Counted from the first letter of the whole stretch, positions 111 through 29,062 are shown. The stretch is 63,026 nucleotides of DNA, filler included, from Octopus bimaculoides (GCF_001194135.2; 5 parts of 5 records of this genome joined end to end with filler, not necessarily neighbours in it); one strand, 5' to 3'. Program-made: numbers and translations. The notes: generated by a model not told the origin, from the letters alone.

Positions 111-1232
111 GATTATATTGGGAGGGAAAGATTGTGGAAGAGCGGATGAGAAATGTTGTATAAGTTTCATACCACTTCAGAAACGTTAGAGCTGAATAGA
201 AAGCTAGAGGAAGGCGGAGGGGCAGAAGAAGAAAGAGGAGATGATGGCAGTTTAAGACGCTATTGTTTATAGTGTCGTCTGGTTCAGTGAAATTTCTTTT
301 CGAATTCTTTTTTGGTTATGTCGAAACGGAAGGGAGGAAAAGGTGTCGTAGGTGTTAGAATAACCATTAATTGGATATCATTGTAGAAAATAGGATATTT
401 GATTCCCTCAGAGGGTGGTTATATTATAGTGTAGTGTGATGGGGAGGGAAATAGTTGTGTTGGGTGGGGTGTAACTTTGAAAGGGGGTGAATGGTAAGGG
501 TTAGGGACTTGAACTATGTTATCCAACTATCCTATTTCAAGTGAATGATGATAACCAATTGGTATTTGGGATATAAAATAATAAATAATAAATAGATAAA
601 TAATTCATTCAACGGAAGAGTTTATTACGGGTGTCCGAATCTTCGTCTAATGAGAGAGAAAAGGAGAGAGAGAAAGAGATGTGAGTGTGTATGCACGTGT
701 GTTTATGTATGAGTGTGTTGAGCTGAATGTGTGTGGGTACGTGAGTGAGAAAGAGAATGAGAGGGAGAGAGAGGGACAAAAAGAAACAGTGAGTATGTAC
801 GTACGTGTGCTTGTGTACGAGTGTGTTGTGCTGAGTGTGTTGTGCTGTGCGTGTGCGTGTATGTGTACATGTGTGTGATTGAGTGATTGAGAGAAAGAGA
901 GAGAGAGAGAGAGAGAGGGGGGGAAGAGACAGTAAGAAAGATGTAGCTCTGGATATATAGATAGAAATACACATGCATTTATTAGTGTACATATGCATCC
1001 TATACTAATAATCTGAAACAACCTTCTACATCTAATACTTCTTGCTCATGTAAATGTTTTAATCCTGTAAATTTTTTCATTAAATGATTGATATCGTTCG
1101 AAATCAATAATTTATTGTGTAAAATTATGCATAGACGATAATTCAATATGCAATTATTCCGGGTTAACCGAAAATATTTTAACGGTTGATTTAATCAGCA
1201 CCGACATCCTTTCATAAACATGTTTATGAATA

Positions 1233-1388
1233 GGCGTGGCTGTGTGGTAAAAAGCTTGTTTCCCAACCACATGGTTTAGGATTCAGTCTCACTGCGTGGC
1301 ACTTCGAGCAGGTGTTTTCTACTATAGTCCCGTGCCAACCAAAGACTTGTGAGTGAATTTAGTAGACGGAAACTGAAAGAAGCCTGTC
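1233..1388 (+). mobile_element. tRNA-derived SINE, family A (octopus-type), 5' half
   Basis: GGCGTGGCTGTGTGGTAA A-box-like head, GGATTCAGTC B-box-like motif, then GTAGACGGAAACTGAAAGAAGCC. Same family as the copies at 21645-22068 and 29672-30029. Confidence 0.85.
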
Positions 1389-1414
1389 ATATATACATAT
1401 ATATATATATATTA

Positions 1415-1462
1415 GGTATTTATCACCCTTCTTATCATCTTTATCACTCTTCTTGTGAAGTA
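1415..1462 (-). mobile_element. Short RTE RT remnant, probable continuation of the inverted piece at 2840-3096
   Basis: Minus strand reads LLHKKSDKDD-KKGDK, matching the RTE 'ILLHKKGDK' motif where the 2840-3096 fragment stops (STILLH). Confidence 0.4.
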
Positions 1463-2839
1463 ATTTGGCCTCCAATAGATTAATACTGACAGGGATCGTA
1501 CACTCCTCCTGTGGATTGCATTTCCTCATTAGTAGAGACAAGATCAAACTAACTACAGAAGAATTGCACTTTCCAATATCTCACTCAAAGTCATCAACCG
1601 AATGATCCTCAACAAGATTCAACCAGTGCTTCATAGCCATCTGAGACCAAATCAAAATGTATTTAGACCAGGGAGATCCACCACATCTCAGGCGTGTCAC
1701 AGGAGGAGTTAAATCAAGACAGCTACCTGCCATTATAATCTTCGTGGATTTCAGCAAAGCATTTAACAGCATCTATCGTTACAAAACGTTGAAGATTCTT
1801 CGAGCATATGATATTCCAGAAGAAATAGTTCTTGCCATTGCAAAAATCCACGAGAAGACCAGAGCGCGTGTGTTGTAATCTGACGGAGAAACGGAATTCT
1901 TTCAAATAGTAGCTGGGATCCTATAAGGAGATACGCTTGCACCATATCTGTTTGCAACTGTATTGGATTATGCAATGCGGCAGGCTATAGACAACGATGA
2001 CGAAGACCTTGATTCATCATAAACCAGCAAAGATCGCTGAGAGCACCAGCAGTAACCATCATAGAGCTGGACCTCGCAGATGATACAGCACTCATATCTA
2101 ATGAAATCAAGCTCAACACCTGCTTAGCAGAGTAGAAACATCAGCTACTAAGATAGGACTGCATCAGCTACTAAAATAGGACTGCATACAAATGTCAAGA
2201 GAACAGAATACATGTCTTTCTATCGTTCAGGTGATACTGAACTGTTGCTTTGAGCAGTTCCAAATTGAATGTTACTGAAGGCTTTTAGTACTTAGGTGGT
2301 TGGGTGAGCAGTTCAGAAGCATACATCAAGATCAGGAAGGCACAAGCATGGACAGCCTGTAACAAACTAAAGAAAGTATGGAAATCCAAATTGCCCGGGC
2401 AAATCAAAATCAAGCTATTCATTGCAACTGTCGAATCAGCGCTATTATATGACAGTGGAACATGGACACTGACAAAGAAATTATTAAACGGGCTAAATGG
2501 ATGCTACGAATGGCTCTGTGAAATGGCAGCAACATATGACAAACAAGTGTCTTTATGGAGACCGGCTGGAATTTAGCGAGAAGATCAGGCAAAGACGACT
2601 GCGGCAATCTAGTCTTTGTGTGCACCACCCTGAGATGGAAGCATTTAAATTAGTCTAGTGGAATTCATTTCATGGTAATGTAAGAAGAGGAAAACGTCGT
2701 CACACTTACATTGACAACTTGATTGTAGACATTGACCTGAAATGTATCCAGGACATCGAAGCAGTGGTGATGGACCGAGAAGTATGGTGAGTAGACTTTG
2801 TTGCTGCGGCCCGGATTGGAACCCGGCAATAACAGATAA
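1463..2839 (+). mobile_element. 5'-truncated RTE/RTE-X-like LINE, decayed reverse transcriptase
   Basis: Frameshifted RT motifs: NYRRIAL..KVINRMILNKIQ, IFVDFSKAFNSI, GIL*GDTLAPYLF, DLADDTALI, ESALLYDSGTWTLT. Contains a 23-bp tandem duplication at 2139-2184. Confidence 0.85.
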
Positions 2840-3096
2840 TTATGAAGTAGGATGGTGCTTGACTCTTTCCACAATGAGGGCATTTTGCCTTCCTTCAGAG
2901 AGAGATTGGATCATAAAACGAGGATTCTCCACAGCTCTTCACCTCCGTATCTTAACATCTCAGTTGTGATGCCATCTTTCCCAGGAGCTTTGTTTGTTGT
3001 CATCAGTTTAAAGGCATTTTCAATTTCACTGATCAAAATAGGTGGCACTTCTTCCAACATTTGTAGCGGTGTGGGATCAATTATACATTCACTCTA
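2840..3096 (-). mobile_element. Inverted 5' segment of an RTE-1-like LINE
   Basis: Minus strand reads VPPILISEIENAFKLMTTNKAPGKDGITTEMLRYGGEELW...MPSLWKESSTILLH, the region just upstream of the RT core. Confidence 0.85.
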
Positions 3097-4506
3097 AAGC
3101 TAGTAAAACAAGCGAACGAATACAAGACTCCTCTGTGCATCGCTTTCATTGATTACGAAAGGGCCTTCAATAGCGTCGAGATGAACGCAGTGTCTAACTC
3201 TCTGGAAATGTAAAGTGTCAAAGTGCAATGAATCAAAGCGCTCAGATGAGATCTTCGGATACATAACAGATACAGCTTTGCTACCACCATCTGTAAGCGT
3301 CCCAACCAAGAAGGGTGTCAAGCAAGGAGATATCATATTTCCAAAGCTCTTTACTGCATGTCTAGAAATGGAATCAAGGATATCGACTGGACAGGTGGCA
3401 TGGGCATCAGTAGCGAAGAACTAACAGTCCTTCGATTCGCAGATGACATTGTACTCATCGCTGAAAGCACAGACCATTAAAACAAAATATATGCGGTTGA
3501 AAGATGTAGCACAAGGCCGAATAAAGGTGCAAAGCGATAAAATCGAGGAGGTAAGGGAGTACGTCTACACATACATTTTTCCTTCACCTTTTACATATTT
3601 CAGTCATTCGACTGTGGTCATGCTGAACACCACCTTGAAGGCGAACGAATAAACTACAGTATTAATGTCTTTTTAAGCCTGGTACATATTCTATCGATTC
3701 CTTTTACCGGTAAGTTATGGAGACGTAAACAAAACAACTCTGGCTGTTAAACGGTGGCGGGGGACAAATACAAACACATAGACACACACACACATAGACA
3801 CACACACACATAGACACACACACACACACATAGACACACACACACATAGACACATACACACATAGACACACACACACGTACATATATGTGTACTCACTAT
3901 ATGTGAGTACACATATAGTGAGTACAAGTGAGTACACAGTGAATACGCGCCGAGATATGGATGCTGAAATCTAAGAGAATAAAGACAGTTTGGAAGGCGT
4001 TTAACTCCATAAAGGATGTACTCCAAACAAACATAGACAATGCCATAGATGCCAAACTCTTTAATAGCACCGCCCTACCGGCTCTCTTATATGCAAGTGA
4101 GACGTGGGCTACTACGAAGAGGAAAGAACAATGATTGGCTACGACGCAAAGGGCCATGAAAAGGTCCATGCTAAGAATAACATTAAGAGAGCATATTTGA
4201 AATGAGATAATTCGAGAACGGAGTGGAATGAACGATGTGATCGCAGAGAATCGAAAGCACAAGTTCCGCTGGGCCGAACATGTCGCAAGTCTCACAGACA
4301 ATAGGTGATCCATGTAGTTGCCGAGTGGTATCCAAGAGATCGGAGAAGGCGATTTGCAAGGTCTCCACGATGACGTGAAGACGATTTAGTTGCCAAGCAA
4401 TTTGGGTGAAGATGGAAAAGACTGGCGCAGTCACGACAGATTGGAAGCGAATTGTGATCAGAAGTGTGTAACAGTATCTGATGGTCTGGTCAATACTGTG
4501 ATACTA
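3097..4506 (+). mobile_element. RTE-1-like LINE, RT core to 3' end, interrupted at ~3566-3930
   Basis: ANEYKTPLCIAFIDYERAFNSVE, KGVKQGDIIFPKLF, LRFADDIVLI, EEVREYVY | VNTRRDMDAEI, PALLYASETW, KFRWAEHV. Multiple stops and frameshifts. Confidence 0.9.
3566..3884 (-). mobile_element. SINE family A 3' half plus microsatellite, left arm of an inverted duplication
   Basis: Reverse complement of 4527-4859. SINE tail motif CAGCATGACCACAGTCGAATGACTGAAA on the minus strand. Confidence 0.85.
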
Positions 4507-4526
4507 TATAAAATATAAAATGTATG

Positions 4527-4859
4527 TATGTACGTGTGTGTGTGTCAATGTGTGTGTGTGTCTATGTGTGTGTGTGTCTATGTGTGTGTGTGTGTCTATG
4601 TGTGTGTGTGTCTATGTGTGTGTGTGTCTATGTGTGTGTGTGTCTATGTGTGTGTATTTGTCCCCCGCCACCGTTTAACAGCCAGAGTTGTTTTGTTTAC
4701 GTCTCCATAACTTACCGGTAAAAGGAATCGATAGAATATGTACCAGGCTTAAAAAGACATTAATACTGTAGTTTATTCGTTCGCCTTCAAGGTGGTGTTC
4801 AGCATGACCACAGTCGAATGACTGAAATATGTAAAAGGTGAAGGAAAAATGTATGTGTA
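4527..4859 (+). mobile_element. SINE family A 3' half plus microsatellite, right arm of an inverted duplication
   Basis: Same diverged SINE 3' half. The non-microsatellite part is identical to the left arm by eye. Confidence 0.85.
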
Positions 4860-5398
4860 TGTGTGTGTGTGTAAATACATGTACATACATGCATAATGCA
4901 TACATACATATATGGTCTCTGAGAAAGAACAATGCGGTACCAAACTTTAGAAACAGGGTACGGTGGGTTGGTTATTTATACCCTGAACAAACGTTCGAAA
5001 ATTGGCATTTTTATCGCCTCAAATCAAAACATTTTAAGAAATGTTTTGAAATACCTGACAGTCATGCAACTCAACAACCTACCTTTCAAATAAATAAAGA
5101 TAAACAAAAGTTAAAAAATAAAAATTTCTTCAGTCGCCGTGAACAAAAATTTGGCTACTTTTGTCATCATAAATAAAAGACAAGCAAGCTAGCGATAGCC
5201 TTGTAGAATAAGATCCCGGCTTCAAAAAGTTTTATATCATATTAACATGCCCATTCAGTGTTTTTTGTTATTTATCTTGTAAATACAAAATTGTCTCATT
5301 TATTTCATTGACTGCTGGCAAAATCGCTAAAACAGGAAACTAATAGTCGTAGTGTGTGTAATTTCAAACTAAAGTATAATGCATAACCCACTCTAGAT

Positions 5399-5434
<36 letters not shown>

Positions 5435-6100
5435 TGTGTATGTGTACTTTTTCACACACACACACACACACGCGCACGCACGCACGCACACACACACACA
5501 CACGTATACACACACACACACACACATGCATACATACTTGTACTCTAAAAGGAAAAGAAAAATGAAAGATTGCCTGTGTCATCGACTTACGTGTGTGGGG
5601 CAACTAAGAAATAAATAATATACAAAAAGAATAAAAGAACAAAGAAACAAGTACATGAATGTATAACTTGTCTCAGACAAAAGCAGAAAATATATGGATA
5701 GAAGGGTTGAAGGTTCGGTTTCCGCCCGAAGCCTGAACTGGCTTATAACATTTAAGTTTGGGTATGATAAAAGAACCTGGTTAACATAAAATATGGCTTC
5801 AATAGGTTTCGTGTCGGTACTGTATTGCTCTATCGGGAATTCTTCATGCATGTGTGTGTGGCCACACACACACACACACTTAAATACGATGTGAACATTT
5901 CCTTTTTTTCACCAATACTTTCATTTAATGATTACGTACAACAACTACCTTTATTTATTTAAAAAAATGTCTCTAACTTAAACAAGTTTCAAATTTTAAA
6001 GGTTTTCAGGTTTCGAAATTTCGTATATACATAATTAATTCGATACAAATAATCAATGAAAGACAAGATATTTATAATTAATTCCTCAATGCCTAATGCA

Positions 6101-6539: not shown

Positions 6540-7240
6540 AGATTCTTGATGTGAAATCGTGTGTGGAAACAGACAATTGTTGTATTTGGGGATGGTCATG
6601 TTGCCAGTTTAGCCAATAAAAACACACGCACTATATATTTAGTGTTAATTTGCTTCAGCTTTATATTACAATAATCGTATTTCGGCCAGAGTTCTTTCGT
6701 CACACTTCTGTGATCTCATCAGTGGTCCTTTGCTTTCTTCTTTCTTATTTGTGTGTCCCTCCTTACTAACGATCAGCCATTTTGTATTTTGTATTCCTAT
6801 TGTATGTGTCTATATTTTCGCATGCGTATCCCTCTATGTGTGTCTATGTTTGTCTATGTTTAGTAAGTGCATGTGTATGTATGGGGAGTGCCTGTATTAT
6901 CTGTATCCCTTGTTTATACATGTTCGCTTAATTTGTTTTTATTTATTTGTTCATGTGTTTATACCTACTTTTTTGTATTCAATTTTAATTTAATTTTGTT
7001 AACGTATGTAGTTAATTCCATTTGTTTTTCTGTGTATTGTATTATATTTTGTTCATATTGTTATCAGTTTATGGGGATTTTATCGTCATATGTTGTGGTT
7101 TGTTGGGGGTTTGTGCTAGTGTTCCATTCCAGTTACCTATTCGGGCTAGGTTTATCTTCTATTATGTGTGTACCTTCTGTAATTTGTCTAAGCGCTGCGT
7201 CTGTTCTATGTGTGGACAAGATTTTAATTTCTATGCTGCT
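6540..7240 (-). mobile_element. Penelope-like element 3' fragment: GIY-YIG C-terminus, A-rich 3' region and hammerhead
   Basis: Minus strand ~7240-7120 reads SSIEIKILSTHRTDAALRQITEGTH...PNR*LEWN, resembling the PLE endonuclease C-terminal 'RQI.E...LNR..EW' motif. Hammerhead lies downstream. Confidence 0.65.
6684..6728 (-). ncRNA. Minimal type I hammerhead ribozyme
   Basis: GGACCA-CTGATGA-GATCACA gaag TGTGAC-GAA-AG aa CT-C-TGGCC. All core nucleotides present, stems I and II pair, predicted cleavage after CUC (6689/6688). Confidence 0.75.
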
Positions 7241-7322
7241 GAACCGCTAAATTATGGGGACGTATACACACCAACATCGGTTGTCAAGCGATGGTGTGGG
7301 GGCAAACACAGACACAACCCCC
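7241..7322 (-). mobile_element. SINE family A internal fragment
   Basis: GAACCGCTAAATTATGGGGACG...CATCGGTTGTCAAGCGATGG matches the family A body. Confidence 0.75.
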
Positions 7323-7367: not shown

Positions 7368-7416
<49 letters not shown>

Positions 7417-8115
7417 NNNNNNNNNNNNNNNNNNNNNNNNNNNNNNNNNNNNNNNNNNNNNNNNNNNNNNNNNNNNNNNNNNNNNNNNNNNNNNNNNNNN
7501 NNNNNNNNNNNNNNNNNNNNNNNNNNNNNNNNNNNNNNNNNNNNNNNNNNNNNNNNNNNNNNNNNNNNNNNNNNNNNNNNNNNNNNNNNNNNNNNNNNNN
7601 NNNNNNNNNNNNNNNNNNNNNNNNNNNNNNNNNNNNNNNNNNNNNNNNNNNNNNNNNNNNNNNNNNNNNNNNNNNNNNNNNNNNNNNNNNNNNNNNNNNN
7701 NNNNNNNNNNNNNNNNNNNNNNNNNNNNNNNNNNNNNNNNNNNNNNNNNNNNNNNNNNNNNNNNNNNNNNNNNNNNNNNNNNNNNNNNNNNNNNNNNNNN
7801 NNNNNNNNNNNNNNNNNNNNNNNNNNNNNNNNNNNNNNNNNNNNNNNNNNNNNNNNNNNNNNNNNNNNNNNNNNNNNNNNNNNNNNNNNNNNNNNNNNNN
7901 NNNNNNNNNNNNNNNNNNNNNNNNNNNNNNNNNNNNNNNNNNNNNNNNNNNNNNNNNNNNNNNNNNNNNNNNNNNNNNNNNNNNNNNNNNNNNNNNNNNN
8001 NNNNNNNNNNNNNNNNNNNNNNNNNNNNNNNNNNNNNNNNNNNNNNNNNNNNNNNNNNNNNNNNNNNNNNNNNNNNNNNNNNNNNNNNNNNNNNNNNNNN
8101 NNNNNNNNNNNNNNN

Positions 8116-8180
<65 letters not shown>

Positions 8181-9091
8181 CCTGACGCATGTTTCGTAAA
8201 TGAGTAAAAGAAAGACAGAGGAAGAAAGTAGAAAATACAGAACGATAATGAAAACTATTATGAGGATGGAAAGAAAGAGACATAAATGTACACCAAAGTA
8301 TAAAACAGCGTGTGGGTGGGTGTTGAGGGGGAGAGGTTAATAACAATCACCCTGGTGTCTAATTAAGCGTGTACTCAAATTTTACCACACTTCGTAGCAC
8401 GTGTGTGCTGGATCGTAAGTGAGCCGGTGCCATCCTGCCACACACGTCAAGCCAACATCATCAGCCAACTGTCACAAATGACCACCATCATTGCTTGTCC
8501 ACCATCAACTATTCTTGTTTTTGATTTCCCTTTTCAGACCAGTTTAGGTCAAACTGATCTGCACTGACACTTTGGTTAACTTTACTGATTGTGTTGTACA
8601 CTTGGAGGAAGTTTACGCGATATCTACGTGTGCAAATCACCGCGTAGTTGCTTAAATAGATATATTAAAGACCCTACTATTAAAAGTACCTGTGCCATTT
8701 TGATGTCAGTGTGACTTGAATCCTTTTAAAAGGAGAATCTTCAATTGAAAAATAAATAAATAAATAAATAAATAAATAAATACCTGTGAAAAACAAAATA
8801 CAGAATCAAACTTTCGTTGCTTTTACCTGCTGGTTTTCAAATTTGAATCCACTTCTATCAGCATTTCGTTCAATTGAACCTTTTTGTTTTGTTAGCTTTT
8901 AAACACTCCGAAAAAAAAAAAAATTTTAGTCTACGAATTGCAAAGATAACATTGGACAACAATTAAAGAAAAATTTCTGTTGCATGAGATTTTTTTTTTT
9001 ACTGATTCTGTCTTTTTGTGTTAATTGCAAATCTGTAATCGGTTTTGCTCTCTATGTTCTAGTTTTCTTGCAATTTCAAGATTAACTTCTT

Positions 9092-9605
9092 ATATTCTTT
9101 TATTCTTTTCAGTCATTTGACTGTGGCCATGCTGGGGCATCACCTTTNNNNNNNNNNNNNNNNNNNNNNNNNNNNNNNNNNNNNNNNNNNNNNNNNNNNN
9201 NNNNNNNNNNNNNNNNNNNNNNNNNNNNNNNNNNNNNNNNNNNNNNNNNNNNNNNNNNNNNNNNNNNNNNNNNNNNNNNNNNNNNNNNNNNNNNNNNNNN
9301 NNNNNNNNNNNNNNNNNNNNNNNNNNNNNNNNNNNNNNNNNNNNNNNNNNNNNNNNNNNNNNNNNNNNNNNNNNNNNNNNNNNNNNNNNNNNNNNNNNNN
9401 NNNNNNNNNNNNNNNNNNATATATATATATATATATATATATATATACGACGGGCTTCTTTCAGTTTCTGTCTACCAAATCCACTCACAAGGCTTTGGTC
9501 AACCTGAGGCTATAGAAGAAAATGTTTGCCCAAGGTGCCATGCAGCGGAACTGAACCCGGAACCATGTGGTTGGAAAGCAAGCTTCTTACCACACAGCTA
9601 CGCCT
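9092..9605 (-). mobile_element. SINE family A, near full length with an internal N gap
   Basis: Tail TTTCAGTCATTTGACTGTGGCCATGCTGG and head ACCACACAGCTACGCC on the plus strand. Confidence 0.85.
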
Positions 9606-9793
9606 TCTAAAAGGACTCAAGTAACACAGACATCAAGATGGCACAGGTACTTTTAATAGTAGGGTCTTTAATGTATCAATTTAAGCAACTGCGCGGTGAT
9701 TTACACGTGTGGGTATCACGTAAAAGTTGACATATTGAGTTACATATATCCTAGTTACAAGGAAGTGACAATTGTTTTTTTTCAGATCTGATC

Positions 9794-11480
9794 ATGGCGT
9801 CTTCAAGTAGACATAGATGTGTGACTAATCCTGATGGCTTCTGTTATGTCTGTGGCTCCTTCACACTTATTCGTCAAAGGTGCAATATCACATTATTTGT
9901 GAGACGGGCATATAAAGCCTATTTTGAAATTCCACCAGGCGACCAAGATAAAAAAAAATTGACCTCTCATGTTGTGTGTCGTATCTGTGAGGAAATGCTT
10001 TGTGACTGGACAAAAGAAAATGAAAGAGCCGGCCGTTTAGAGGTTCTATGGTTTGGCGAGAGCCCAGGGACCAGACAAATGACATTTATGTGTGGTCAAC
10101 ACAAAAGGCATCGGCAAGAAAATTAAGCGTAAAATATTCTATCCCAATATTCCTTCAACAATTAGACCTATTATGCACTCTGAGACACTCCAGATTCCAG
10201 TTTTCCTTGGGTTTACCTCTTCGGAAGGCGAAGTTAGCGAACAAGAGATCAAGGATGATAACGAAGATCAAGAAGTTACATCAGAATTCCAAGACATCTC
10301 TTGTGGTACAGAAAAATCAATTCCTCAACAGTTTAGCCAAGCAGGACTGAATGATTAATGTGTGATTTGGGAATCTCCAAGACTGTAGCTGAAGTTCTAG
10401 CAATCCAGGCTGCAAGAAAAACATTTACTTGACCAAACTACAAAAGTTTCTTAATTTTGAAAACGAGACCAGATTTTGTGTCATATTTTTCAGAAGAGAA
10501 ACACTTTGTTTACTGCCACGACATTTCCGGTCTCCTCTAGGAATTAGGAATCCCCGCGCACAGTTCAACTGACTGATAACTATTTCTAAATAGTTCTAAG
10601 CTTAGTCTAAAGTGTGTTCTCCTACACAATGGCAATGTTTATGGAGCTGCCCCAGTCGGTTTACTCAGTGCGTTTGCAAGAAGAATGCAATGGCATAAAA
10701 ATGGTTATTGACCAAGTGAAATATCACGAGCATAACTGGACCATTTGTGTATATTTGAAAATGGTCAGTTTCTTCCTCGGACAACAGAAAGATTTCACAA
10801 AGTATCCTTGCTATCTCTGCATTTGGGAGATCCGAGCTCGAGAAAAAATTTGAATTCAGAAGTGAGACTCTGGAAGTCGCGTCCCAAATATTGTGAATAA
10901 TCCAATTGTCATCCGAAAAAAGAATATTTTCCCACCACTCCGTATAAAGCTGGGTTTAATAAAGCAATTCACTACGACATTGAATACTGATAGTGAATGT
11001 TTTCAACACATAGCCTCTGCATTTCCTGGTTTGTCATTCAAGAAGATCAAAGCAGGTGTGTTGACGGACCTCAGATTTGTGCACTTGTACGTGATGAGGA
11101 ATTAGTCGGAAAGATGAATGACAAGGAAAGAGCAGCTGGCTTGTCATTCGTAAAAGTCATAAAAAATTTTCTTGGAAACAGAAAAGCAGATGACAATGAA
11201 ATTCTTGTAAATAATGTTTTCGGCTTTCCATGATCTTGGGTGTAACTCGAGCGTTAAACTCCATTTCATGCATAGTCACCTCGATTAATTCCCTGAAAAT
11301 CTTGGAGATGTAAGTGATGAACAAGGAGAGCGCTTCCACTAAGATCTCAGGACCATGGAAGTGCATTACCAAGGACCATGGGACAAAAACATGATGGCAG
11401 ACTACTGCTGGAGCATTAAACAACATTTCCCTGAGAAAGTCTACAAACGAAAGAGCTCCAAGCGCAAATTCTTGCCTGAA
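9794..11480 (+). pseudogene. Chapaev3-like transposase pseudogene
   Basis: C-X7-C-X2-C (CVTNPDGFCYVC), HVVCRIC, MVWREP, CVYLKMV, FPPLRIKLGL, DGPQI, SDEQGERFHQ-like and DYCWS motifs across frameshifted ORFs. Family assignment comes from recall of the Chapa zinc-finger pattern. Confidence 0.8.
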
Positions 11481-14883: not shown

Positions 14884-15567
14884 TTCAATATNNNNNNNNN
14901 NNNNNNNNNNNNNNNNNNNNNNNNNNNNNNNNNNNNNNNNNNNNNNNNNNNNNNNNNNNNNNNNNNNNNNNNNNNNNNNNNNNNNNNNNNNNNNNNNNNN
15001 NNNNNNNNNNNNNNNNNNNNNNNNNNNNNNNNNNNNNNNNNNNNNNNNNNNNNNNNNNNNNNNNNNNNNNNNNNNNNNNNNNNNNNNNNNNNNNNNNNNN
15101 NNNNNNNNNNNNNNNNNNNNNNNNNNNNNNNNNNNNNNNNNNNNNNNNNNNNNNNNNNNNNNNNNNNNNNNNNNNNNNNNNNNNNNNNNNNNNNNNNNNN
15201 NNNNNNNNNNNNNNNNNNNNNNNNNNNNNNNNNNNNNNNNNNNNNNNNNNNNNNNNNNNNNNNNNNNNNNNNNNNNNNNNNNNNNNNNNNNNNNNNNNNN
15301 NNNNNNNNNNNNNNNNNNNNNNNNNNNNNNNNNNNNNNNNNNNNNNNNNNNNNNNNNNNNNNNNNNNNNNNNNNNNNNNNNNNNNNNNNNNNNNNNNNNN
15401 NNNNNNNNNNNNNNNNNNNNNNNNNNNNNNNNNNNNNNNNNNNNNNNNNNNNNNNNNNNNNNNNNNNNNNNNNNNNNNNNNNNNNNNNNNNNNNNNNNNN
15501 NNNNNNNNNNNNNNNNNNNNNNNNNNNNNNNNNNNNNNNNNNNNNNNNNNNNNNNNNNNNNNNNNNN

Positions 15568-15609
<42 letters not shown>

Positions 15610-15610
15610 G

Positions 15611-15671
<61 letters not shown>

Positions 15672-15676
<5 letters not shown>

Positions 15677-15890
15677 TGTGCCTGTGTTTGTCCCCACTAC
15701 CGCTCGACAACCGGTGTTGGTGTGTTTACGTCCCCGTAACCTAGTAGTTCGGCAAAAGAGGCTGATAGAATAAGTAGCAGGCTTTAAAAAATATTGGGGT
15801 CGATTTATTCGACTAAAAGTTCTTCAAGGCGGCGCCCCAGCATAACTGCTGTCTAATGATTGAAACAAGTAAAAAAAAGACAGAAGATAG
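15672..15890 (+). mobile_element. SINE family A 3' half
   Basis: GTTTACGTCCCCGTAACC...GATAGAATAAG...CTTCAAGGCGGCGCCCCAGCAT...GAAACAAGTAAA. Confidence 0.85.
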
Positions 15891-18520: not shown

Positions 18521-19656
18521 ATGTTTGCAAAAAACAAGAGTAAGAGAAGAAAACATACAATCTCGACTATGCTGCTGTTCCAACAACAACAACCACAGCA
18601 ACAGCAGCAACAGTTGCAACTACAACAGCAACAACAAGAACAACAAAAACAGCAACAACAGGTACAACAGCAACTACAACAACAACAGCAAAATCAACAG
18701 CTGTTAGAATTATTGTTGCAGTCCAAAAACCCTTCAGGTTCATTTTTGGCAGATGGATTGCTAATTCAATTGAAGAATATTCTTATAATCCAGAAGAAGG
18801 GTTTACGTTTTCTGCATACTTCAGAAGGTATGAAGTAATGTAGAAACTGGACGGACGAAAAGAATGTACGACTTCTTTTAAGGAAATTTCACACGCAGAA
18901 CATGAAAAGTATTGCAATTACACTCCGCCGAGAAAACCACCTGAAATTTGTTTCGAGAAAATAATCAAACTGCTATCTAAAATATTTAGTGAAAGAAGTT
19001 CACTATTTGATATTCGTTGGGAGTACATGACTTTGGAAAAAACAAAAAAGAACAAAAAACAAGAAACTGAAGATTTCGTCACGTATGCCGGAATCGTAAA
19101 CAGAGAATGTGAAAAATTTAAACTAAACGAATTAACCCCGGACATGTTCAAATGTCTAATCTTTGTACAAGGATTAACTGCAAGCAAAGATGCAGATATA
19201 CGGACTCGGATATTGACAAAACTAGAACAGGATTCGAAACTAACTCTACAGGCAGTGACTGAAAAATGCCAAAAGATTATAAATTTACGACAGGACGCAG
19301 AAAAAATTGAAAACGGTTATTCAAATATGCATACATGTCGACTTATAACAGATAAGGAAAAAGAAAAACAACAGTCAAGGCCCAAACTATGCTATGGATG
19401 TGAAGAAATACATTTAAAAAGAAACTGTCCTTTTAAAAATCTGAAATGTTTTGGATGTGGAAAAGTCAGGCATAAGAATTCACATTGTTGTGTGAAAAAA
19501 AAAAGGTCGAATGATAAAAAATTCGAGAAAAAAGTATTGTCAACACAAATGCAAAGCGGGGCACAAAAAAGAAAATTTGTCTCCATAAAAATAATTAATG
19601 TAAAAACGAGACTACAGTTGGACACAGGTAGTGATATCACGATAATTAACGAATAA
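18521..19656 (+). pseudogene. gag: gag-protease pseudogene of the Mag-like element
   Basis: ORFs 18515-18838 and 19027-19656, linked by frameshifts and stops. Confidence 0.85.
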
Positions 19657-20982: not shown

Positions 20983-21644
20983 ATGTATGCATATGTGTGT
21001 GTATATGTGTGTATATATGTAACTGTGTGTTTGTATGTGTGTGTATATTTGTTTGTTTGTCTGTGTGTGTGCGCGCGTGTGTATGTATGCGTGTGTATGT
21101 TTAGATAGATATATTGTAAACAAGTCTATATGTAATAAATATGTGTATATATCCCATCCCTGTGAGTTGCTTTCCATCCATCAATATAAGAAACAACCAA
21201 CAAAAATACACACACACACGCACGCACGCGCACTCACACACACACACAGAACCCACATACCCACACACGCACCCCACCACATGTAAGTATATGTGTGCAT
21301 GCTTATATGTATGAGCATGTATGTGTGTAATGTATATATATGTGCGTAAACACGTGCATACACACACACATATACACTTTAACTTAGCGCTAACACGCTA
21401 ACTTAAATGTACCCTTTCACAGTGACATACTAATTTTGTATAATGAAGATATAGAATATATACAGTTACATGGAAGTAAGGGGATAAGTCGCGAAAGCTA
21501 TGCAGTCAAGTGGGTAAATGAAATAGAAAGGGTTGGAGTATACCTATGATGAAAGGCTCCCGGTCGTGATCATCTCATTTTTATGGAATTATCAAACTTT
21601 CTAATGTGTATGTATGTATGTATGTATGTATGTATGTATGTATG

Positions 21645-22068
21645 TACTCTTTTACTTGTTTCAGTAATTTGACTGTGGCTATGCTGGAGTATCGCCTTTA
21701 GTCGAGCAAATCCACCCCAGGACTTATTCTTTGTAAGCCTAGTACTTATTCTATCGGTCTCTTTTGCCGAACCGCTAAGTTACGGGGACGTGAACACACC
21801 AGCATTGGTTGTCAAGCGATGCTGGGGTGACACACACACACACACACACATACACACACACACACGCACACACACACACACTCACACACATACATAAATA
21901 TACATATATACGACGGGCTTCTTTCAGTTTCCGTCTACCAAATCTACTCACAAGGCTTTGGTCGGCCCGAGGCCATAGTAGAAGACACTTTCTCAAGATG
22001 CCACGCAGTGGGACTGAACCCGGAACCAAGTGGTTGGTAAGCGAGCTATTTACCACACAGCCACTCCT
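21645..22068 (-). mobile_element. SINE family A, full length with a central CA microsatellite
   Basis: Complete head-to-tail match to the other family A copies. Confidence 0.92.
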
Positions 22069-22958: not shown

Positions 22959-23146
22959 TTTAATATATACAATTACAAAAGAGCTACTAATAGTTTCATG
23001 CTTCAAAATACATTAAACTGGCAAATTTATTTCACATGCTATGCATCTTCTAGCAATCTTTCAGGATCAGTTCATAACGTTAAATGTATTTAAAAGCCAG
23101 GACGCTGGTCTATGAGAAAACATGAGAAACAACGAGAAGGAAAAGC

Positions 23147-23732
23147 GTGAAGAAGATTTTTAAAAGACCCTCGATACAAATTTCGTACACCTACTGCCCC
23201 AAAGACATTATTACTCGTGAGTCACACCAACATCCCATTTCCAGCTGTATTTGTCAAGACTCTGAAGCTTGCCCACGTGAACAGGCGTGTTTGGTAAACA
23301 CAGTTTTTATGAATCCGAAGTTACACTAGTGCTCCAAGACAACATTATTCAGAAGAAAAATTACATCGGTTTATGGGAAGGCAATTTTAAAAGCCGCAGT
23401 GCAAACCAACTGTCTTCTTTCCGACACATTGATAAAAATAAGGCCACTAAATGGATAGCCATATATAGGATCTGGAGACCAAATGCACACCACATACAAT
23501 CAAATCGTAGATTTGACTGTAGATAAATCTACAAAGAATCGTAGATAAATCTACGCCATAAATAAACGGATCAAAGAGATGCATTAAAGGCGTAACTGAA
23601 AGACCACACATTCTTTTTAGGTCTAAGAATTTCACCACCCTACTTAATTCCAAATCCAAAATTTTTAGCGAACGCAAGCACACGGTCAAGTTTCTTTCAT
23701 GCAACTGGAAGACACCACCTGCTCCGGATTGA
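23147..23732 (+). mobile_element. Penelope-like element: linker and GIY-YIG endonuclease pseudogene fragment
   Basis: IQISY; CICQDSEACP..ACLVNTV; FYESEVT; KNYIGLWEGNFKSR; SSFRH; INGSKRC; LLNSKSKIFSERKH. Same architecture as 43090-44020. Confidence 0.75.
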
Positions 23733-24030: not shown

Positions 24031-24770
24031 CTACATTAATTATGGTTCCTACAGACAAAGAGGACGAAGATCTTAGTCTTGTTACTTCTTTCTTCTCATA
24101 TCACTTTTTGCACCAGCCTTCTTCACGTTTTTTTCTTGTCCTTTTTTTCTCATGTTTCTCATAGACCCGCCTCCTGGTTTTTAAATACATCCCCGTTATG
24201 AACTGAATTTCAAAGATTACTTGGAGACACTTGGCATGTTANNNNNNNNNNNNNNNNNNNNNNNNNNNNNNNNNNNNNNNNNNNNNNNNNNNNNNNNNNN
24301 NNNNNNNNNNNNNNNNNNNNNNNNNNNNNNNNNNNNNNNNNNNNNNNNNNNNNNNNNNNNNNNNNNNNNNNNNNNNNNNNNNNNNNNNNNNNNNNNNNNN
24401 NNNNNNNNNNNNNNNNNNNNNNNNNNNNNNNNNNNNNNNNNNNNNNNNNNNNNNNNNNNNNNNNNNNNNNNNNNNNNNNNNNNNNNNNNNNNNNNNNNNN
24501 NNNNNNNNNNNNNNNNNNNNNNNNNNNNNNNNNNNNNNNNNNNNNNNNNNNNNNNNNNNNNNNNNNNNNNNNNNNNNNNNNNNNNNNNNNNNNNNNNNNN
24601 NNNNNNNNNNNNNNNNNNNNNNNNNNNNNNNNNNNNNNNNNNNNNNNNNNNNNNNNNNNNNNNNNNNNNNNNNNNNNNNNNNNNNNNNNNNNNNNNNNNN
24701 NNNNNNNNNNNNNNNNNNNNNNNNNNNNNNNNNNNNNNNNNNNNNNNNNNNNNNNNNNNNNNNNNNNNNN

Positions 24771-27012: not shown

Positions 27013-27239
27013 NNNNNNNNNNNNNNNNNNNNNNNNNNNNNNNNNNNNNNNNNNNNNNNNNNNNNNNNNNNNNNNNNNNNNNNNNNNNNNNNNNNNNNNN
27101 NNNNNNNNNNNNNNNNNNNNNNNNNNNNNNNCTGGGGATGCGAAATGACATTTGAGGGAAAGTATTTAGTTTATGAAAATCGCTTTGGAAAATAAAATCA
27201 TTAATTTATCCTTAAAAATAATTTTGTTCTTATTAAGTA

Positions 27240-27650
27240 CGAGGTCTGATCAATAAGTATCCGGACTGTTGCCATAGTAACGAAGATAAAACACGCAGAG
27301 TAAAGCCGCCTGGTACAGATTGAGCTTGAACTGCGTTGTACAAGCGCACTAAGTTTTAACGTATTAGCTCACTTCCGCTATTTACAGCAGTGCTTGGAAG
27401 GAAGGTGTGTAGCGTGTGATCGTCGCATTGACCATGACAGAAGAAGTTGTCATGGCGATATCTGCTCAGAGGCCTATAAAAGTTGCTGAAAATGTATGGA
27501 GAGGAGTGTATGAGCCGTAGAAGTGAGCTAGATTGTTAAATCTTAGTTTTAACGTTCTAGCAGCGTTCAAGGCCAACCTGTGTGCTTCACCCTGCGTGCT
27601 TTAGGCTCGTTACTATGGCAACAATCCAGATACTTATTGATCGGACTACG
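27240..27650. mobile_element. Non-autonomous mariner derivative (MITE), TA target site, long TIRs
   Basis: TA|CGAGGTCTGATCAATAAGTATCCGGACTGTTGCCATAGTAACGA ... TCGTTACTATGGCAACAATCCAGATACTTATTGATCGGACTACG|TA. Confidence 0.88.
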
Positions 27651-29062
27651 TATACCCAAAACGTTATTATTCCATAGTGCTTTATGTGGCTGAAATTTTA
27701 AGAGGAACACTTATTAGAAAATTGACATTTTTATCTTTAAATGACGTATTACTTTTGCAGGGAAGGAGTGAAAATTAATCAAGATTTTTCTAGGGGTGAG
27801 GACAAAGAAATGGTTGGGAAATTCTGATCTAGAACAAGTCATGATTTCCAAATAATGATCGTTTTGCGAAAGTCTCTCCAATTACAAACATCATTTTGGA
27901 ATCATGTCTGGCGCCGTCCACTCCTTGTCTCGGTATCTGTCACTCTCTCTCTCTCTTTCCCTCTCTCTTTCCCTCTATTCCTCTCTCATGGTCTCTCTTT
28001 ATCTGTTCCTTCTTCCATCTCTCTTTCCTGTTTTTTTTTGTTTTTACATCATCTCCCTTCATATTACTTTCGTTTATTCTTTCTCAGTCTCTCGCTATCC
28101 TTCCTCTCACTCATTCGTCTCTTTTTCCTTCTCTCAATTCCTTACCCCTTCTCTCTCACAGTTACTCTCCTGTTCTCTTGTTTCAGTCTTCGTTGACAGA
28201 TCGCAGGTGCTGTTGACAGCGGATCACTTACCTTATTCTAAAAAATCCTGTCATTTCCACAGGAATCGGTTTAGATGTTTCCAAAGATAACGAAATACGG
28301 CCGTGCTTCCTTCTTTCACACTGTTCCCCCGCAAAGACACTCATCCTTACTGATTGCCGATACTAAGCTGATTTTTCGTCTAAATTAGGCAGCAACCAAA
28401 AGTATACACAGTGTTGCTACTCATTTTTTTTTCGCGTCTATCAAGACAAACATTCACCCCGAAATATTATGTAAAGTAATATGTAAATGAGTGTCCGTCA
28501 GTTTCGACGGTGAGCAGTCAGTCGTTCAATCGACCTAACTACCTGTTAATTGAAGACACTGGTGGAACCAGTGTGACACAGTATGACAAGGATGGAACTT
28601 TAAATTACAGGTACATTCTGCCCAATGAGTTTTCGAACAATTTCTGTCAACTCAATTTCACTCCCTAGATGAGGCTGTGACAAAAGACTCTGGCTCAAGA
28701 TGCCGCACAATGGTAAAATACATCATAGAACTGGTATTCACTTTATTCCCTTGATGAATGGCCAGAGCTCCACTTCACGTTCCTTTCCTTGTGATACCGA
28801 GTTTCTTCAATTTACCCCATTTTGATTTGTCATCTGGTTTTGTTTTCACTATTATACTTTTAACGGTTGAGTACCATATTTAGCAGTACATGGAGACAAT
28901 ACTTATAAACAATTACTAAAGACTTACGTAAATCGGAGAGACAGATCCGATGATGACGATGATGATGATGATCATCATCGTCGTCTTCGTCGTCGTCGTC
29001 ATCATTATCATCATCATTATTACCACCGTCTTGTGTAAATTGGTCCCTTCGATGAACTTAAG

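Follow-up and report, generated by a model that had tools for sequence, protein, structure and literature searches.

Template switches of the 1-4-3-2 type create inverted repeats and account for 31% of the confident human-chimp events (PMC5453318), and template switches that create hairpins have also been described (PMC8794818; bioRxiv 10.1101/2023.04.19.537475). In this four-point class of mutation, a sequence is replaced in one step by the reverse complement of a nearby sequence, so that a perfect inverted repeat, potentially an RNA hairpin, results; the tracts are tens of bases long and lie within a replication fork (PMC5453318). Snap-back extension, iterated starts and small deletions form the signature of polymerase-theta-type or synthesis-dependent end joining (PMC4912351, PMC2943611, PMC5728401, PMC5068794), and the templated insertions made by end joining are usually a few to a few tens of bases long, with a median of 7 bp (PMC4912351). 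Inverted pairs of Alu-type SINEs, which are substrates of ADAR, usually consist of independent insertions that are 10-30% diverged.

We analyzed an inverted repeat in a window of Octopus bimaculoides DNA (the whole stretch of 63,026 nucleotides under analysis, in which several pieces are joined; positions are counted from its first letter). The locus has in common with the four-point class an apparent one-step replacement by a nearby reverse complement, leaving a perfect inverted repeat that could form an RNA hairpin, and in common with synthesis-dependent end joining an inverted insertion from the same molecule, a small deletion, repeated abortive copies of a flanking motif at one junction and a likely short microhomology at the other. 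In contrast to the tens of bases that characterize short-tract, short-range templated insertions, ~320 bases appear to have been copied here from 0.6-1.3 kb away, and stutter filler is present in addition. Because both the tract and the jump far exceed those of the described classes, we treat the event as a large relative of the template-switch and templated-insertion classes rather than as a typical member. As in the inverted Alu-type pairs, two opposed SINE copies lie within ~1.3 kb, and a long, near-perfect duplex between them is predicted, whereas in this case one arm was apparently copied from the other and 207 bp are perfect.

The inverted repeat and the elements around it

The repeat finder revealed two arms of 311 nt (3566-3876 and 4549-4859) with an ungapped complementarity of 96%. 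Upon gapped global alignment, 3566-3884 was found to be the reverse complement of 4527-4859, and the spacer between them (3885-4526) measured 642 bases; the original prediction of a ~320-bp inverted duplication at these positions around a ~640-bp loop was therefore borne out. The non-microsatellite part, which had been read by eye as ~200 identical bp, proved to be identical at all 207 positions (3566-3772 against 4653-4859, 100% identity), and a perfect match of this length is far beyond what would be expected by chance. Mismatches between the arms were confined to a compound (TG)n/TCTA microsatellite composed of ~16-base units, GTGTGTGTGTGTCTAT. In particular, substitutions were present at 3773/4652, 3855/4556 and 3864/4547, and the sole length difference was a 14-base unit (4596-4609 of the right arm) that was missing from the microsatellite of the left arm. 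All other direct or inverted repeat pairs in the same piece showed an identity of at most 88.5%. The features of the locus are as follows.

1232-1413, plus strand: 5' head of the old SINE to which the right arm belongs; its (TA)n end marks where the internal microsatellite of the family begins
1414-2835, plus strand: LINE A, a 5'-truncated and decayed non-LTR reverse transcriptase (Pfam RVT_1, E=1.7e-8 on the conceptual translation)
2842-3069, minus strand: RTE copy B, 5' segment in inverted orientation (residues 54-129 of the homolog P0001; tblastn, 57% identity, E=1e-23)
3076-3565, plus strand: RTE copy B, direct part 1 (P0001 residues 183-370, from tblastn and translation; RVT_1, E=2e-12)
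3566-3884, minus strand: left arm, secondary copy (3566-3772, unique SINE body with 10 tail bases; 3773-3884, compound microsatellite)
3885-3938, plus strand: junction filler, in which GTGAGTAC(A) occurs three to four times in degenerate direct form and once inverted; repeat family D4
3939-4526, plus strand: RTE copy B, direct part 2, which forms the hairpin loop (VNTRRDMDAEI... to the C-terminus and 3' end)
4527-4859, plus strand: right arm, source (microsatellite 4527-4652 and native 3' SINE body 4653-4859, in SINE sense orientation)
4860-4915, plus strand: rest of the degenerate SINE tail, (ACAT)n/(TG)n, absent from the left arm (sequence read; compared with the (ACAT)13 tail of the SINE copy at 21640)

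Three further inverted pairs of 120-140 bases elsewhere in the window may be the ends of DNA transposons. One of these (8612-8733 and 9603-9724, 88.5% identity) flanks a SINE copy and an assembly gap, and the other two lie at 23034-23155 and 24118-24239 (79%) and at 27238-27375 and 27520-27652 (73%).

Both arms are 3' SINE halves, and a full-length copy of this SINE is located at 21640-22067 on the minus strand. In that copy, a head (~175 bases) is joined through an internal (TA)n(TG)n microsatellite to a body (~190 bases), and the tail is (ACAT)n. Additional copies or pieces of copies were found at 15610-15874, at 9425-9605 with 9093-9147 (across a gap) and at 7237-7316, in addition to the head at 1232-1413, which gives a density of ~6 copies per 24 kb of known sequence. 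The gap at 9148-9418, and probably also that at 14892-15567, interrupts a SINE copy within its internal microsatellite. In the body region, the arms showed 66-73% identity to every other copy with which they were compared (in the piece and in loci L003 and L004, with one copy taken from an Octopus bimaculoides chromosome, L003), whereas the other copies were 68-81% identical among themselves; the strong divergence of the arms from the rest of the family had been correctly predicted. At ~21 non-microsatellite columns in which at least two other copies agree, both arms share one differing state, and these common derived states include a 5-base deletion (TTA-----CCGG compared with TTAGCGGTTCGG). 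Because of these ~21 common derived states and the low identity to all other copies, the arms are judged to be one old, privately mutated SINE copy that is present twice. ARAGORN found no tRNA in the SINE heads, which we nevertheless presume to be of tRNA-type origin. The conserved 26-base core pattern of the SINE had no matches in JGI metagenome contigs, and the 20-kb octopus loci L003 and L004, from Octopus sinensis and O. bimaculoides chromosomes, contained only one partial copy.

The surroundings of the right arm show a single, old and interrupted SINE. The head at 1232-1413 is 82-83% identical to the heads of the 21640-22067 and 9425-9605 copies, it has the same plus orientation as the right arm, and only LINE sequence lies between the two (1414-2835 and 2842-4526). 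LINE A, in which the reading frames contain many stops and weak tblastn matches lie at 1711-2498, sits inside the internal microsatellite of the SINE. One old SINE has thus been split in its microsatellite by two LINE insertions, with the right arm as its 3' half. The presence of two separate dead LINEs in the microsatellite of one SINE also suggests a tendency of LINEs in this region to insert into microsatellites.

The second of these LINEs, RTE copy B, is a truncated copy without the endonuclease part. In a protein search, its nearest homologs were retroelement reverse transcriptases from other animals, with 45-54% identity, and one of them is a protein named after C. elegans F52C9.6, which we take to be assigned to RTE-1; by its reverse transcriptase domain, RTE copy B is accordingly placed among the RTE-clade LINEs. 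Its second direct part was aligned with six homologs and matched P0001 residues 386-497 at 3970-4305 (tblastn, 65% identity, E=2e-41). RTE copy B also shows a 5' inversion of the kind seen with twin priming: the direct part starts 6 bases away from the inverted segment, at residue 183, and residues 130-182 are missing.

Another retroelement remnant was observed at 19027-19656 on the plus strand, where an open frame of 209 residues resembles the Gag of LTR retroelements; it includes a CCHC knuckle, and a DTGS protease begins within it. In a partial alignment this frame is 63-64% identical to O. sinensis LOC115224914 and LOC115216253, and it is 43% identical to O. bimaculoides LOC106873898; it had no Pfam match.

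Junctions, copy direction and a proposed template switch

The first direct part of RTE copy B terminates in ...KIEEVREYVY at 3565, and the left arm begins directly after GAG TAC GTC TAC, in agreement with the earlier claim that this arm splits the RTE reverse transcriptase at EYVY. Whereas the six homologs read EYVY-LGQE-VNMRRD without interruption, the frame of RTE copy B stops at 3565 and resumes at 3939, so that 12 RTE bases (LGQE) are replaced at the left arm. The expected uninterrupted layout is ...GAGTACGTCTAC-12 bases-GTGAATACG..., and loci L001 and L002, which are only 65-71% alike at the DNA level and contain no SINE, were used to deduce the empty site at the protein level. No target-site duplication was found at the left arm, and no direct repeat flanks it.

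At the outer junction, the sequence reads ...GGGAGTACGTC|TACACATACATTTTTCC..., and the donor reads ...CACACACACA|TACACATACATTTTTCC.... The end of the arm and the Y codon expected after GTC likely share a 3-base TAC microhomology, the DNA before the insertion being deduced from the proteins of other species. At the inner junction, the common sequence ends in ...CACACGTACATA and is followed by 54 bases of filler and then by GTGAATACGCG of the RTE. The filler reads TATGTGTACTCAC TATAT GTGAGTACAC ATATA GTGAGTACAA GTGAGTACACA, and TRF reported a period of 15 with 3.1 copies at 3880-3926. The exact sequence GTGAGTACA occurs four times (once inverted) within 48 bases of this region (3889-3936) and once in the other ~24 kb of the piece. 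Since the filler motif GTGAGTAC closely matches the RTE sequence GTGAATACG found at the point where the element resumes, the filler looks like the product of repeated, slipping and partly snapped-back priming from the resumed RTE end. The switch point at the inner junction is masked by this stutter.

The two arms differ in how they fit their surroundings, and the direction of copying can be read from this difference. The right arm is native, as it lies in SINE sense orientation, has the head at 1232-1413 upstream and has a SINE tail that extends ~55 bases past the common part, to about 4915. The left arm is the secondary copy, as it interrupts the RTE frame, replaces only ~12 bases and lacks a target-site duplication. 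On this evidence, the right arm is the source and the left arm the copy.

The age of the copy was assessed from the same alignments. RTE copy B contains at least nine in-frame stops, at least three frame changes and a ~70-base deletion between AESTDH and KTKYMR, and such decay would imply a divergence of the order of 10% if the element was intact on arrival. Zero differences at 207 sites correspond to a divergence since copying of less than about 0.7% per lineage (Poisson, 95%). Arms as old as RTE copy B should differ at tens of these sites, so the copy, or its last homogenization, is much younger than its surroundings. The local and recent copying that had been claimed is thus well supported by arms without a single difference inside a long-dead RTE copy and only 642 bases apart.

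We consider that a single DNA-level template-switch event, either snap-back templated insertion during break repair or switching at a stalled fork, is the probable origin of the left arm. Before the event, the old SINE (head 1232-1413 and 3' half 4527-4915) would have long been split by the two LINEs, with all three elements decayed. A break or a stalled nascent strand would then have occurred in RTE copy B between EYVY and VNT. The right-hand 3' end (the bottom strand, ending in the complement of GTGAATAC) would have folded back ~590 bases on its own strand and, after abortive slipping starts that left the GTGAGTAC stutter at 3885-3938, would have begun primed synthesis at the inner margin of the SINE microsatellite (~4527). 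From there, ~320 bases would have been copied rightwards to 4859, which would append the top-strand sequence 4527 to 4859 to the bottom strand. Finally, this end would have been rejoined to the left-hand end through the TAC microhomology, with the loss of the 12 bases that encode LGQE. The switch points would follow the order 1-4-3-2, with point 1 at 3565, point 4 at 12 bases further on, point 3 at 4527 and point 2 at 4859. The enzyme, the choice between a break and a fork, and the microhomology are the parts of this mechanism that we infer.

The outer end of the arm lies far from the resumed RTE and its inner end lies beside it; this order agrees with a snap-back from the right-hand end, which would place the stutter on the side of initiation and the microhomology join on the other. 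A template switch had already been proposed in the original prediction, and the anatomy of the junctions (a reverse complement, a 12-base replacement, no target-site duplication and a stutter) makes it the best-supported origin without proving it. One observation against it is slightly odd: three substitutions are present in ~112 microsatellite bases, compared with 0/207 in the unique part. This excess of differences in the microsatellite needs error-prone copying, fast microsatellite mutation or assembly noise.

Alternative origins of the left arm

The original prediction held that two independent SINE insertions could not explain the shared private mutations. Independent insertions of family members would indeed not share them; however, gene conversion from arm to arm was overlooked. 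Under that explanation, an old, 5'-truncated SINE was inserted in reverse orientation into RTE copy B, and conversion between the arms later kept or made them identical. In its favor, the local density of SINE copies is high (the ~6 per 24 kb noted above), the left arm ends with 10 bases of tail-like sequence, and conversion between the arms of inverted repeats yields exactly such common private mutations, as is established for palindrome arms; template switching between imperfect inverted repeats is also known to homogenize their arms (PMC8604942). Nevertheless, this history takes two events instead of one, and its first step, an independent insertion, would have left no target-site duplication and would have removed 12 bases. 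The truncation of the left copy would additionally have to fall within a few bases of the boundary between RTE copy B and the right copy, the private microsatellite with its 16-base period would have to be converted too, and arms of 320 bases are short for sustained conversion. We therefore regard insertion followed by conversion as unlikely.

An RNA-mediated origin could take two forms: an active RTE reverse-transcribed a transcript that ran through the right arm and inserted it nearby, or the reverse transcriptase snapped back onto the target-site strand while RTE copy B was being inserted. Either form seems quite unlikely to us. A template close by is expected for switching at the DNA level and not for retroposition, and in a genome of ~2-3 Gb a landing 640 bases from the source is very unlikely for the latter. 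The left arm does resemble 5'-truncated retrocopies in having a tail end on one side and a messy 5' junction on the other, although it lacks a target-site duplication and its tail is only 10 bases long. The inverted segment at 2842-3069 indicates that RTE copy B already carries a rearrangement of the retrotransposition type, and recent activity of RTE and SINE families has been reported in Octopus (PMC13282606, PMC9115989). However, a snap-back during insertion would make the copy as old as RTE copy B, which conflicts with 0/207 differences in the arms compared with at least nine stops in the element, unless conversion is added.

An assembly artefact, in which a short repeat contig or gap closing placed a second, inverted SINE fragment inside RTE copy B, has to be weighed against the state of the scaffold. 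Nine N-runs of 119-947 bases are present (at 7417, 9148, 12975, 14892, 17035, 22510, 24242, 25484 and 27013), most of them in microsatellites, as with (CTAT)12 at 7368-7416; gaps of this kind are typical of a short-read scaffold, and a perfect inverted repeat of 207 bases is hard for short reads to resolve. Yet none of these runs lies within 2.5 kb of the repeat, the nearest being that at 7417. Both junctions are free of gaps, and the inner one has 54 bases of unique filler that reads must support. Moreover, the unique RTE sequence offered the assembler no reason to break, and the microsatellites of the two arms differ, which argues that the arms were not built from one consensus. An artefact is thus rather improbable.

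That a young SINE subfamily with this sequence was inserted twice independently is extremely improbable: hundreds of SINE families with recent insertions have been reported in O. vulgaris (PMC13282606) and our comparison spans only ~85 kb of octopus DNA, but the right arm is no fresh insertion, being the 3' portion of a SINE that two dead LINEs have split, none of the copies from the piece and from loci L003 and L004 is more than 73% like the arms, and the left arm has neither a head nor a target-site duplication.

Independent retroposition of a SINE as the left arm does not agree with the missing target-site duplication, the 12-base loss, the 10-base tail and the 66-73% identity to the copies compared. 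Three other readings were considered and rejected. Twin priming, a model developed for L1, inverts part of an element's own upstream sequence without duplicating it. RTE copy B shares with twin-priming inversions an inverted segment inside a LINE copy, and only this segment (2842-3069) shows such an inversion, whereas the left arm duplicates SINE DNA from the flank and is placed between two direct and nearly contiguous RTE parts. A TIR transposon or MITE was rejected since there is no target-site duplication, the arms are SINE and the interior is RTE, and the flanks GGAGTACGTC and TGTGTGTGTG do not match. A fold-back (palindromic) inversion was rejected since only a non-adjacent block of 320 bases was copied, and not everything outward from the break.

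The predicted hairpin and its meaning

An RNA of 3540-4885 (1346 nt) was predicted to fold into a stem of ~310 bp, of which 207 bp are perfect, with a minimum free energy of -781.9 kcal/mol. The predicted fold thus contains the long, nearly perfect intramolecular duplex that characterizes ADAR-edited inverted repeats. In O. bimaculoides, the proportion of loci that could give rise to long, near-perfect dsRNA is exceptionally high, and the hyper-editing signal is very strong (PMC5625713). Because inverted repeats close to each other are the main origin of this signal (PMC5625713), the ~310-bp stem would be an expected target of ADAR, or of Dicer, if the locus is transcribed; the dsRNA and editing suggested in the original prediction are plausible in this sense. 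Elsewhere in the window, a (TG)21 run is directly followed by (CA)37 at 5403-5526, and this back-to-back inverted microsatellite would also form a hairpin.

No gene or exon was recognized around the locus, and ten reading frames over both junctions, the loop and the flanks had no exact match in a collection of 15 billion proteins. A separate open frame of 110 residues with a cysteine-rich start (CVTNPDGFCYVCG...) was observed at 9794-10126 on the plus strand; it had no Pfam match and no record in the same collection.

We propose that the left arm is a neutral scar; the mutation behind it is of an ordinary type and stands out chiefly by its size and its legible junctions. It is very unlikely that one step created a transcribed long-hairpin locus with a perfect 207-bp stem that could now give rise to new small RNAs or bind ADAR strongly as a substrate. 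If this were true, the locus would be a large-scale analogue of the de novo births of hairpins and miRNAs by template switching in primates, and it would indicate that copying from a reverse-complement template can extend over hundreds of bases in the germline of cephalopods.

The biological weight of the locus itself is small: it is a single neutral-looking scar in a repeat-rich stretch and, if edited, would be one more member of a well-known class. It nonetheless offers a clean and datable case in which a perfect long inverted repeat arose from old, dead repeats in what appears to be one mutational step, and one can read at a single place which sequence was the source, which is the copy, in what direction synthesis ran and what scars the junctions bear. 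If such events are common, local templated copying would add to the octopus dsRNA pool beside the chance pairs formed by independent insertions.
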